This document shows positions 1-25,100 of a DNA stretch of 64,000 nucleotides, piece by piece. The DNA comes from Setoptus koraiensis. Its lineage: Eukaryota > Animalia > Arthropoda. The notes under the pieces are model-generated. The model saw only the letters and a program-made list of their open reading frames with translations. It was not told the DNA's origin and searched no databases. The translations under genes and the position numbers were made by a program. Every line of letters begins with the position of its first letter. The stretch's first letter is position 1. The stretch lies in the NCBI GenBank assembly GCA_048013815.1, contig CM106586.1:15128001-15192000 (forward strand), given 5' to 3'.

Positions 1-3000
1 TACAACTTTTGCCATCTTGTGCCCGGCGTCAGCTGTAAGCCGGGCCGATAAGTTAAGTTATAAGTGCCCAACTACACGTTTATACGTTCGTTGAGCCAAC
101 AATAGTTATGAGAGTTGCCAACAGCTGATGAGAGTAGAGCGCTGACGCAATAAGTGAGAAAATGGCAGCAGCATTTCATCATTATTTCAACATTAAACTC
201 TTGTCCTGCCAATAATACGGCCAACAGCCACGGCTTTGGCGTGAGTGTTGCCCATGGTTTTAGTGTCTTGCCAATAAATGGTCATCGACGACGACCACGA
301 CCACGATGATGATGATATGTGATTTTGTGCGGTGTTTGTTGTAGCTGTCGCTGCTGTTGTTGCCGCCGTCGTTGTAGTTGCTGTTGTAGTTGCTGTTGTA
401 GTTGCTGTTGTTGTTGCTGTTGTCGCTGGCCAACAACAACAGCAACAACGAGACAAAGTGCCCCTCTGACGGCCAGCAAAGCGTCGATTCCAATTGGCTT
501 GCCACTAAAGCGACGCTGTGAACTAAATGAATACCATCAACAAGTGGTTGGTCATCGGTTATAGCCCATTGTTGTTGCGAGTGGTCACTCAATAAACAAG
601 CGTCGCCGTGCGAGTTACATAACGATACGCAGCGCGCAACAGAGGAAGACGACGATGGAGAAGAAGATGAAGAGCTTGTTAGCGAGATGGCGTCGCTGCA
701 GTGATGGGCATCGATGCCGAGACAACATTGAATTAGCGACTGTGATGCAATTGTTAACTATGTCATAACAGAGAAACATCATGTCAGCGTCTCATTGTTG
801 TCGCTGTTGGCTCAGCGTTGTCTGCAACGCTGGCTAAGGCCGAGGGATAACACCAACACTAAATCACTTAAACGCTTCTCGTTGTCCAGCGCCGGGCCGG
901 CCGACGAGCGGCGAAGCCGCCGAGCAGAGAGGACGCCGAGCGGAGAAAAAGGCGACCAGAGAAGAAGAGGCGAAGAAAAGAAGAAAAGAAGGAGAGAAGA
1001 AGAGTCTCATCTAATTCTTTTCTCCTTTATCTCGTTGATTACAATCACTGACAAATTACACACACAGGCAGCTGGCGCCGATCTCTCACATTTAGACAAC
1101 GGCAACAACAACAAATAACTAAAATAGAATTGGCCGCTCAACAAGATTGTAAATCATGTATTATCGTGTTAGAGAGCCAAATTGGCTGCCGCTGCCGCTA
1201 AGATCGAGAGAGTTAAAGTTACAATAATAGGCTATGCAGTTGCAACTTGCAACAATGATAACGGCAAAAGTTGCACTCATCAAGCCAGCCAGAAAACTGG
1301 TGAATGGAGGAGGGCATAGGGCCGCTCGCTGCAATAGCTGGCTGTAAATCTCGCTGCAATAGCTATGGGAACGGACCGAAACTAACCAACAAACACACAA
1401 ACAATACGACAGACAATCAAAGGCGCGGATTTGCAGCGATCGGCCAACTGGCGAGCGACTTTGGGGCCTGAAAAAGAGGAAAGAAAAAGCGTCGAAAAGC
1501 GCCGAAAGTTTCACAGTCGAGAGAGTCAATCGACGCAGTCAATCCAGCAGTGTGGATGAAATAGACTCTGTTTAATAGAGTGACGACGGGCAAAAACAAT
1601 GCGATTGTGAGCGCAAAGAGTGGCAAGCAAACACACACGACAAATTAGATGAGAGAATGCTCGAATTAGAGCGGATGCGCCTCTCAGCGAATCAGATCGA
1701 TTAGAGTGACCGTGAGCCGTCTATAAATAATAGTTGTCCATCTAACGGTGCGCCGTCCATATCCAGCACTGTCCACATCCAGCGCAGTCCGTCCAACAGT
1801 TGGCTGTCGGCTGAAAGTTGGCTGTCAATGGTCGAGAATCTGCTGTCAGTTGAGAATCTGCTGTCAGTCGAGAATCAGTCGGCAGTCGAAAATCAGTCGC
1901 CAGTTGGCTCGCATCACCAACAACCAGTCAGTAGTCACTCTCTCTTGGCGAGCGTTCTCTCGACAGTCTATTGCAGCGGTTGCGAAGTTTCCAACATTCT
2001 AATGCCAGCAGCCGATCCACTGCAACATACAGAGCAAATCGACAGAAAACAGCCAGTTACATAGCAAGCGAGATTGCGCAACAAGCTGGAGCAAAATTCC
2101 GGCAAGTTCATTACAACACCTCACGACAGTCATACAAACAAACGATTAATTGTGATTCAGTTATTGATCGCTGACACAGGCGGAAGGAAGCCCTGGCGGC
2201 GCAGTCAATATTTCCATCAAAACTGTGGCACAATTCGCTCAATTCGCACAATTAGCAGCCAGTTGCGTCGACAGCGACGACGACGACAAATAGCTCTCAA
2301 ATATACACGACAAGCTCACAAATATACACGACAAGCTCTCGAAAATATACGACAAGCTCGCTGAAATATCCGGCGCAATTAAGATTGTAATAGCCGCTAG
2401 ACGGTTGCGTCATACGCACAGCAAAAGACATAAGTTACCTGCGACTATATTCGGCAAACGACAGCAACGGCGACGACGACAACACCGACAGCGACAACAA
2501 CATGATGATGATGAAGTAATCGGCACAGGCGAAGAGAACAGTGTAGCCACTGACGACACACAGCGGACAGGTGGAGCAGATCTGGCGACAACGTTAGCAG
2601 TTGATTGCCTTGTCGATTGAGATACGACAACTCGCATGCAATTGACAGCAGCACTGTGACAGACCGAACACACCGACTGACTTGCGACTGAATGCAAATG
2701 TGATTATGTAATTGAAACGACATACGATAGCGGCATAAGTGGCTGCTGAGCGGTCGCAATCTAATTCCGAGACAATACAAAATAGAGTGACAATTTATCG
2801 CGGCTTCTCTGCAGCGCAGGCAGCAGCCATTGAGCTTGTGTGGCGTGGCTGATATAGCGAGAAAACGGCGAGAAAACGGCGAGAAAACGGCGAGAAAACA
2901 GCGAGAAACAGCGAGAAATAGGGAGAAAATAGCGAGAAATTACAGAGAAAAAATCGTCGTCGTCACCGTCGCCGTTGCTTGTGGCGTCACTGGAGCACAG

Positions 3001-3119
3001 GTAAGAGACTTGCGAGCGGAGTAGAGACTAATGGGATGCCCAATTTGCACTCTTCGAAATCAAATCGCGCCAACAAATCGGCTCGGCTCAACTAGGCTCA
3101 ACTGCACTCAACTACCGCC

Positions 3120-3290
3120 CGCAACAACCGCCCGAACAGCAACAACCGCCCGAACAGCAACAGCAACAACAGCAGCAGCAACGGCAACAACAGCAACAAC
3201 AACAACAGCAGCAGCAGCAGCAGCAGCAACGGCAACAACAGCAGCAACAACAACAACAGTCCGAACAGCAGCAGCAACAACAGCGGCGGC
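3120..3290. repeat. Degenerate (CAA/CAG)n trinucleotide tract
   Basis: Mixed CAA/CAG/CGG/CCG triplets give poly-Q/T/A-type ORF artefacts. Similar tracts occur at about 340-450, 33280-33370, 34725-34840, 38140-38270, 38470-38610 and 42205-42320. Confidence 0.9.
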
Positions 3291-22100: not shown

Positions 22101-25100
22101 CTGTCGGCGTCGGATAACGGTCACATATCCGCGCCACATCTGTACAATTTCATTCAAATATACGTATATAAATACATACATAAGCATTTTCCGTTGCCTA
22201 ACCGCCGCCTATTTGCCCCCGAACGCTTCTAACCTTAATTGACAATGCACTTGTGTGCCGCTGTGTGTCGCAGGGCCTCATGGAAAAGTTTCACCTGAAG
22301 GCCGTGTTCCTCGAGGAGCCCGCCTTCGTGAATTTGGCCGACCCGGACACCGAAACGGGCGAATGCAAAACAAATCGAGCCGTCAGGTGTCGTTATGTCA
22401 AGAAAAAGAAGGCGTCCCCCTCGTCGAGCAAATTATCCAAAATATCCGCTCCGAATGATATTGGCAGAGAGATGGCGCCAATGTCCAATGATAACTTCAC
22501 TATCGCTCGGCGACTCCATGCTGATCAGCTAATGCACAACACCAATAGACAGCGCGCCCTCGACGGCGATGGCAAGACCAACGCGCCGGTTAACGTGGCC
22601 CGATCAATGCGTCCGACACAAAACAATGATGGCTACAATAACCAAAATATTAATAATAATATCAATAATAATCAAAATAACGACAACGACGACGATTACG
22701 AGTACGAATACAAGTGTTGCAGCGGTTTCTGTATCGACCTAATGGAAAAGTTTGCCACAGATCTCAAATTTACCTACGATCTATACAGGTGAGCAGCGTG
22801 CATATTCCATAAAGCACAGCACGTTTAGATCACGTGATCTAGATTATATTATCTCTCGCAAACTGATCCCCAAATTTCTGTTTCCATTTTTCCCTGTTTA
22901 CGACCCACTCAACAGGGTCAAGGACGGCGTTTGGGGAGTTCTCAATGTAAGTTTTTGTAGTCAAATCCCTGGTTGACACTCGTTTTGTTTCGACAAGATA
23001 TAGTATGATTTGTTGCGACGTATCATTCGCGAATCAATGCGTAGATGGTCGTCTTATGAAAAATATCGCTCAGAATGGTTGTCGTTGTGGGACAATTCAT
23101 ATTATACACAATTTGAGCTGAGATTTAGCGCGAATTTCAGAGCATATGCGCGCCCCACAAACTGTTATCCATCAGCGGCGACCGCAGTATTAATGAATCG
23201 ATCAATCCATTGTCAGGTATCGCTTCTCGGCCTTATGGCTAAGATCAAAGTGTAGTATCTGTTCTTCCGTGCTTGACCGCACAGGACGGTACGCATGTCG
23301 TACCTAAGGTCAAAAGCAATCTTTCACGGGGATCACCTGGCTAGCTTGCTACCTGGTGATCACGGATCGCTATCGCATTGCACTAATTGCGACCTGCGGT
23401 CCACCCTTACTTTTTAAAACTAAACTAAACTAAACAAACCGGCGCGCCGGCCCGCGGTGCCCGGTTCGGTCTCCGCTGTCGGTGGCGCCCGAACCGGGTA
23501 ATCTGGGGACGGACCGGTCTGCGGCCCGAAGCGCCCTACCCAATCTATCGACTCAATCTCACACCTACACGCGTCCCCTCTAAACTGGAACGGCACTCAG
23601 AACGGCAAATGGAACGGACTCATAGCCGAGCTGGTGAACAGAAAGGCCGACGTGATCGTTACGTCGGTGAAAATCAATTCCGACCGACAGAAAGCAGTGG
23701 ATTTCACGGTGCCTTTCCTAGACACTGGCATATCGATAATTGTCAATAAGCAAACCGGTGTTATATCCAAGCTGGCCTTTTTAGGTAAGAATTGGCGCCC
23801 GCATGATTCGCATAACCCCCCATATGACTCATATGATATGAGCGCGTAGGCGCAAATCATTGAAATGATGATGGCAAGCCCTCTAAGTGCTGAAGTAATA
23901 CTGAATAATATATCCCCTGGTGAAATATTCTTTTGTTAATGTGCGCGCAAACCTGGGGCCCCCCGATGTCGTGAATAACAAACATCGAATGTCAGAACCG
24001 TTCGATACATTGGCCTGGCTAATGTTCATTGGCGTTGGAATTCCCGTTGCGGCCATCTCAATATTTTTCTTTGAATGGGCCTCACCGTCGGGATTTTACG
24101 CAAATGGAAAGCCGTCTGTAGACAGGAAGTTCTCGTTTTGTCGCACACTGTGGATGGTGATGGCCATTTTGTTTGGCTCGGCGGCGCACATCGACAGTCC
24201 AAAGGGCTACACGGCCCGTTTTATGGTGAGTTGAATAAGGTTGAGTATGATGAATAAATATGAACAAAATATGGCCCCAATATAGGCTCGCTTTCTGGCT
24301 CGCCAGTGAATAATCGCCTAATTCGCTGACGGATCGAGCTGAAAATGTCGCTTTTTTCTGTCACGGCGCGCGCATTAAACTGAACCAACCAATTGATCCA
24401 TTCCGCCACTGTCACACAAGGGCAACATCTGGGCCTCATTTGCGGTGGTATTTTTGGCTGTTTACACGGCCAATTTGGCGGCATTTATGGTGAGTCGACA
24501 CTGTTTCTGATTACCTCTGACGCGATATTATCATATCGAGATATCATCATATCGAGATATTATCATATCGCCCGCGACAAGCAATGCCCATTAACGATTT
24601 CTCCGCTGTTTGGCGTCTGTCTGTCTGGTCTGTTTGGTCTGTTTGGTCTGTCTGGTCTGTTTGGTCTGTCTGGGCTGTTTGGTCAGATAACTCGCGAGGA
24701 GTATCTCGACTTCTCGGGCATTGGCGACCGCCGACTGTACAACAGAAATCTGCCCCTTCGATTCGGAACCATTGCCGGCGGAAACACCGAGGCCGTGCTG
24801 AGCGCCAACAAGCCCAACCTGCACAAATACATGCAGCGATTCAATAAGAGCTCCTCGGAGGAAGGTAAGCGCCTCAATGGTCGCCACGACCACTGTTGGC
24901 CGCAATTATCGGCCACCACTCGCCACGAGCGGCCTTGCCATATTGCGCAATTTGTCTTATACACTGTGACTTAACCGCTGTGACTTTGACCACTTGACCC
25001 GAATTCCCGATGTCTCGTCTAGGTGTGAGCGCGGTGCGACAGGGCGCACTGGACGCCTTCATATACGACGCCGTCGTGCTGGACTATCTGGCCGGCCAAG

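Follow-up and report, generated by a model that had tools for sequence, protein, structure and literature searches.

Two U2 snRNA genes in a very small mite genome: compensated changes in stems IIa and IIc of a copy lying in an NMDA receptor intron

Results

The U2 locus and its host gene

The stretch of DNA analysed here (the window; 64,000 nt of Setoptus koraiensis) yielded only one RNA family match in an Rfam scan, U2 snRNA. The match covers 191 nt of the forward strand and positions 1-192 of model RF00004, with a score of 116.3 bits (gathering score, 46; E = 7.6e-23), and its fold beat those of 200 of 200 shuffled sequences (z = -3.4). The first-pass annotation had placed the gene at 23219-23406; the start stands, but cmscan puts the end 3 nt later, at 23409. 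This intronic copy is designated U2a, and its features, together with those of the surrounding gene, are compiled in Table 1.

Table 1. Features of the U2a locus and its host gene (window coordinates; upstream positions also relative to the U2a start)
Feature	Position	Strand	Sequence or remark	Basis
Microexon, NR2-type NMDA receptor gene	22916..22946	+	31 nt; cag acceptor, gtaagt donor; frame continues	by eye
Host intron	22947..23600	+	654 nt; holds whole U2 transcription unit	by eye
PSE	23156..23172 (-63..-47)	+	CACAAACTGTTATCCAT	upstream comparison, positions counted by eye
TATA-like / PSEB-like box	23188..23195 (-31)	+	TATTAATG	comparison with other snRNA genes
U2 snRNA coding region	23219..23409	+		cmscan, fold z-score
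Branch-point recognition sequence	23252..23257	+	GUAGUA, within block GTGTAGTATCTGTTCTT	
Stem-loop IIa	23267..23285	+	CCGUGC / UUGACC / GCAC(A)GG	paired in cmscan, RNAalifold
IIa inner stem and loop	23269-72 / 23279-82; loop 23273-78	+	GUGC / GCAC; loop UUGACC	sequence read
Stem-loop IIb	23288..23304 (strands 23288-93 / 23299-304)	+	GGUACG / CAUGU / CGUACC	identical in U2b
IIc 3' strand	23308..23313	+	GGUCAA, exact IIa-loop complement	directly after IIb
Sm site, deviant	23318..23326	+	AAUCUUUCA	aligned to model AUUUUUgg (cmscan)
Stem-loop III	23331..23361 (strands 23331-37 / 23355-61)	+	GAUCACC / GGUGAUC	cmscan, RNAalifold
Stem-loop IV	23364..23402 (strands 23364-70 / 23396-402)	+	GGAUCGC / GCGGUCC	cmscan, RNAalifold
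A-rich tract, candidate 3' box	23416..23439	+	AAAACTAAACTAAACTAAACAAAC	after RNA end
Next host exon	23601..23785	+	ligand-binding S1 segment	homologue search

U2a had been described as a sense-oriented gene within an NR2-type NMDA receptor intron, immediately 3' of a microexon, and this is borne out by the splice sites, as read, and by the homologues of the exon that follows. The exon upstream of the microexon ends at 22789 (by eye), and the U2 transcription unit takes up almost half of the host intron. The exon downstream of the intron, with host exons searched separately rather than as a joined model, matched 21 homologous fragments with the ligand-binding domain PF10613, most of them also with PF00497, under source names reading "ionotropic glutamate receptor NMDA 2B". 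A spider NMDA 2B was 64% identical, and the close fragment homologues (ENA, Logan assemblies) were 98%, 82%, 80%, and 74% identical. By these matches, the genome falls among chelicerate-like animals. A repeat or mobile element as the origin of the flanks of U2a was ruled out, both flanks being unique in the genome. The open stretch crossing the gene in antisense codes for 36 amino acids, too few to trace U2 loci in other arthropods by it.

A second U2 gene with the same stem II

The assembly searched (48.76 Mb, two contigs) contains exactly two U2 loci according to the covariance model, U2a and a second copy, U2b (C2:10553329-10553520, minus strand), which scored 114.8 bits. Likewise, the 19-mer AAGTGTAGTATCTGTTCTT, allowing up to two mismatches, occurs exactly twice. 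The first 86 nt of the two copies are identical, including stems IIa and IIb, and the GGUCAA complement is also common to both; this 5' identity could be due in part to gene conversion, besides selection. The 3' halves differ at ∼28% of positions. All 50 pairs that RNAalifold predicts for the two copies jointly remain intact, with both bases different in two of them and a single base in four; in stem III, two double-sided and three single-sided changes leave the pairing intact throughout. Except for promoter motifs, the flanks of U2a and U2b are unrelated. The comparison of all U2 copies in the genome, which had been proposed as a check, thus came down to a single further copy, and that copy is non-canonical. 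Because U2b carries the same variant stem II as U2a, canonical U2 is absent from the assembly.

U2b lies ∼400 bp from a coiled-coil ORF (neighboring ORFs at its locus, L002, are 2767-3132 on the minus and 2070-2627 on the plus strand) and ∼1.1 kb from an ORF resembling the CBS-domain end of a ClC chloride channel. An antisense stretch of 50 amino acids at U2b had no words in common with any database protein.

Promoter and 3' flank

The flanks of U2a and U2b were compared with those of U1 (L003), U4 (L004), U5 (L005), U6a (L006), and U6b (L007), all located in the same genome. An upstream PSE motif with the consensus CRCAAACNGTNWTYCAT lies at exactly the same position (-63 to -47) in U2a, U2b, and U1, and in U4 it is displaced upstream by 1 nt. 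The U6a motif lies at -68 to -52, which is 5 bp further upstream than in U1 and U2, and U6b matches it partially in that same register; upstream of U5, the PSE motif was not recognized. The U6 genes contain a TATATAA box and terminate in a T-run. In arthropod snRNA promoters, such as those of Drosophila, Pol II and Pol III genes differ in how far the PSE lies from the downstream box, and the spacing found here appears to match that rule by analogy. A conserved upstream PSE, the lack of which the first-pass annotation had named as an argument against U2a, is therefore present and common to U1 and U2b.

The PSE motif was rejected as a genome-wide marker of snRNA genes: its 15-nt core had 15 matches in the assembly, no more than the reversed-pattern control with 12. 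Of the 15, four belong to the upstream regions of snRNA genes, and no Rfam RNA was found near any of the remaining 11. Because matches are about as frequent as in the control, it is only their position relative to snRNA genes that is informative.

A TATA-like box comparable to that of U2a was located by script at -29 in U2b, -33 in U1, -31 in U4, and -29 in U6b, and by eye at approximately -30 in U5 (GTATATAAT) and U6a (CTATATAATG). Downstream, an A-rich tract starts 7 nt past the end of U2a and 10-27 nt past the ends of U1, U4, U5, and U2b; it was found in all five Pol II-type snRNA genes and in neither of the two U6 genes. The PSE, the TATA-like box, and the A-rich tract together argue that U2a is an independent transcription unit and not an RNA processed from the intron. 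Full length, the PSE, compensated substitutions, and a 3' end without an immediate poly-A also ruled out a retro-pseudogene of an snRNA.

Beginning 28 nt past the end of U2a, the region 23437-23500 is very G+C-rich and unique in the genome. Within it, AACCGGCGCGCCGGCCCGCGGUGCCCGGUU is predicted to fold into a strong hairpin (-20.6 kcal/mol), and CCCGGTTCGG...CCGAACCGGG form another inverted repeat. A hairpin is also found downstream of U2b (CTGGTCCA...TGGACCAG, ∼50-80 nt away), and others follow U1 and U4 at +58 and +78. Such downstream hairpins could have a role in forming the 3' end or in termination.

The 5' domain and the stems of U2a

The first 48 nt of U2a, which contain the U6-pairing region and the branch-point recognition sequence, are canonical: they equal the Rfam consensus except for an inserted A and one loop base (cmscan), and the AAAG-type animal U2s recovered differ from them at a single loop position. 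The block GTGTAGTATCTGTTCTT is invariant in the MAFFT alignment A3, an invariance that is built in across the fetched sequences, which had been retrieved with a pattern containing this block. Stems I, IIa, IIb, III, and IV are all paired in cmscan and RNAalifold, and every element that had been read from the sequence alone (stems IIa, IIb, III, and IV, the IIa loop, and GGUCAA) was recovered in its place. In the minimum free energy fold of the whole RNA, GGCCUUA of stem I (23229-23235) pairs with UAAGGUC (23305-23311), which overlaps the IIc strand. U2b has CACGGUC at this place and cannot form this pairing, which is therefore probably fortuitous.

Compensated changes in stem IIa and its IIc partner

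Where the Rfam consensus for stem IIa has uauCAG...CUGaua, U2a has UCCGUG...CAC(a)GGA: at four pairs, both bases differ from the consensus yet still pair, and a C-G pair has been added at the loop (cmscan). The loop itself, UUUAAuAu in the consensus, reads CUUGACCG, and the stretch following IIb, auaUUAaa in the consensus, reads AGGUCAAA. Loop and complement fall on the same model columns as their consensus counterparts (cmscan). Three pairs of IIc are thus changed on both sides (A-U to G-C, u-a to C-G, and A-u to C-G), the result being the 6-bp helix UUGACC/GGUCAA; with CGGUCAA as the complement, U2b has 7 bp. The proposal that the IIa loop and its IIc partner had changed together is upheld by these doubly changed pairs at homologous columns, and "rewired and compensated" is a fair label for stem II of U2a.

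The two alternative forms were compared by means of predicted energies (ViennaRNA), as the best fold with the IIc strand blocked versus the best fold with IIc enforced. By this crude, protein-free measure, the IIc form minus the IIa form amounted to +2.6 kcal/mol for U2a and +1.2 for U2b, compared with a mean of -0.7 (SD 1.7; range, -4.3 to +2.9) for 34 other U2s. The bare IIc duplex was predicted at -6.4 kcal/mol in U2a and -8.8 in U2b (mean of the 34 others, -2.4), and the IIa hairpin at -5.7 kcal/mol in both (mean of the others, -4.6). Both IIa and IIc are more G+C-rich here, and the balance between them is predicted to stay within the normal range, with U2a at the end favoring IIa.

Comparison with other U2 snRNAs

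Column-wise counting of pairs on the MAFFT alignment was dropped, because the alignment put the mite's bulged IIa residue (A) in the wrong place and, in several rows, set the IIc register off by a column. Instead, a register-free script was applied to 36 sequences (U2a, U2b, and the 34 others), which compares the 8-nt loop with the longest complement after IIb. Most of the other U2s and both mite copies have a complement of 6-8 bp beginning ∼20 nt into the post-IIb region; five of seven environmental U2s have only four to five contiguous pairs, with one internal mismatch or bulge. The IIc complement lies directly after IIb in U2a, in U2b, and in all 34 others. Six loop classes were encountered, each with its own partner: AAUAU, AAUAC, AAUCU, AAUUU, GUGACAA, and UUGACC(G). 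Among these 34 U2s, it is the rule and not the exception that the IIa loop and its partner change in a compensated manner.

The sequences compared came from two kinds of source. Scanning metagenomes for the conserved block with a UUGACC loop at the same offset retrieved 13 contigs (L008-L020), all of them genuine U2 by Rfam (90-122 bits), with 5' ends that are not animal-like. Bacterial and archaeal genome contigs, scanned for the conserved U2 block, contained 51 such stretches (L021-L071), which reduce to 32 distinct U2 5' domains of animal or plant type, none of them human by appearance; these are eukaryotic contamination, that is, host DNA binned into public MAGs. In viral contigs, the conserved U2 5' motif was not found.

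Several of the MAG-borne U2 genes stand in tandem arrays (GTDB), for example with repeats of 1378 bp in a Hormoscilla MAG, 2081 bp in an Anaerolineae MAG, and 1410 bp in a Metamycoplasmataceae MAG. Another MAG contaminant, L031:43-162, has a normal 5' end of 48 nt followed by a very different stem II region, and L026:5830-5949, probably a pseudogene, has lost an internal segment running from the 3' strand of IIa to the Sm site.

Sm sites

The Sm site of U2a (AAUCUUUCA) lies at the expected place, but has a C inside the U run and lacks the final G, and that of U2b (AAUAUUUGU) is nearer the consensus. As AAUCUUUGG occurs in the U2 of other animals (L027, L062, and L068), the internal C is tolerated elsewhere. 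The missing final G is unusual. The Sm site of U5 in the same genome (AAUUUUUCC) is also without it, and Sm sites of this genome may be relaxed in general.

Discussion

U2a is very probably one of two functional U2 genes of this mite and an independent Pol II snRNA unit within an intron of an NR2-type receptor gene. That U2a looks functional, and is not a pseudogene, had been argued from its compensated changes, and the full-length model match and the promoter point the same way. From these features, we infer that U2a is expressed, and an Sm core would presumably assemble on it despite its deviant site. Transcription by Pol II would start from its own PSE/TATA-like promoter and involve the A-rich 3' element, and the unit would merely happen to sit, in sense orientation, in the NMDA receptor intron. 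Stem IIa and the pairing of its loop with the IIc strand would have drifted from the usual animal sequence via compensated substitutions, so that the splicing-cycle toggle between the mutually exclusive IIa and IIc would have been kept in a more G+C-rich form. By analogy with yeast, this toggle would be expected to work in the mite as well.

One may ask whether U2a is instead a decaying or low-activity variant, with U2b as the real working U2 and the compensated IIa/IIc changes merely inherited. Its Sm site is indeed further from AUUUUUG than that of U2b, and its IIc helix is 1 bp shorter (6 versus 7 bp). However, U2a matches the model over its full length with a score slightly above that of U2b; its PSE occupies the position seen in U1 and U2b and is accompanied by the TATA-like box and the A-rich 3' tract; and all of its differences from U2b in the stems preserve pairing. 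A dead copy with an intact promoter would also be unexpected in a genome with only two U2 loci, and we consider a failing U2a rather unlikely. Far less credible is a fortuitous, roleless complementarity between the IIa loop and GGUCAA, with only stem IIa mattering in this lineage. A 6-bp Watson-Crick match did arise somewhere in the shuffled 55-nt downstream stretch in 227 of 5,000 trials (4.5%), a control that ignores both the homologous position of the match and its retention in U2b. The actual match sits on the homologous columns of the Rfam model, has been kept and even lengthened in U2b despite divergence immediately beyond it, and has its counterpart in a matching complement at the same position in all six loop classes sampled; chance is thus a highly improbable explanation.

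A more far-reaching idea starts from the tiny, intron-poor genomes of gall and rust mites. Their U2 toggle might have been rebuilt as G+C-rich helices, through coevolution with proteins that recognize or remodel stem II, or through altered toggle kinetics. All four inner pairs of IIa are swapped and IIc has three G-C pairs, compared with only A-U pairs in most eukaryotes; the weakened Sm site of U2a also counts among the features to which this idea appeals. We regard such a rebuilding as unlikely; if it were true, the lineage would be a natural experiment on the degree of stability that the IIa/IIc switch tolerates.

The IIa/IIc compensation in U2a is real, yet it adds a further case to a familiar pattern, and its novelty is small. 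Covariation is the route by which the alternative pairing of IIa and IIc was first recognized, and because it is also documented statistically already, no new question is opened here. The two are regarded as competing helices, both with covariation support (PMC7657543). To that support, the mite adds one more independent compensated set, of seven pairs. For a very small arachnid genome, the analysis also provides a clean annotation consisting of two U2 genes, a PSE consensus, the Pol II/Pol III spacing, and a likely 3' element. A literature search for mite or eriophyoid snRNAs found nothing; the Aculops genome paper mentions the spliceosome only with regard to one U12 intron.

Compared with canonical animal U2 (the RF00004 consensus and, from contaminated MAGs, L023, L056, and L024), U2a shares the 5' 48 nt save for a single stem I loop base, the branch-point recognition sequence, the order of stems I, IIa, IIb, III, and IV, and a length of ∼190 nt; in both, the complement of the IIa loop directly follows IIb. 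What sets U2a apart is stem IIa (CCGUGC/GCAC(A)GG versus AUCAG/CUGAU), its loop (UUGACC versus UUAAUAU), the IIc partner (GGUCAA versus AUAUUAA), and the Sm site. With the yeast toggle (Ares and Igel, 1990; Hilliker, 2007; Perriman and Ares, 2007; summarized in PMC4712673), U2a has in common two mutually exclusive pairings on the IIa loop region, stem IIb in both forms, and close predicted energies, whereas the sequences are unrelated outside the pairing logic and the toggle of U2a is a predicted one.

The loop itself recurs in the environmental, non-animal U2s (L008-L020), whose IIa loop, UUGACCG, is identical to that of the mite and stands at the same offset after GUUCUU. Its partner is CGGUUAA in L008, L017, and L012 (six Watson-Crick pairs and one G-U), CG(A/U)UCAA in most others, and a looser GGUUCA in L011 and L019. 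Unlike the mite, these U2s keep the usual stem IIa (UCAG/CUGA or UAG/CUA), and neither their 5' ends nor their 3' domains are animal-like. The shared UUGACCG loop is therefore convergent or very ancient rather than a sign of kinship.
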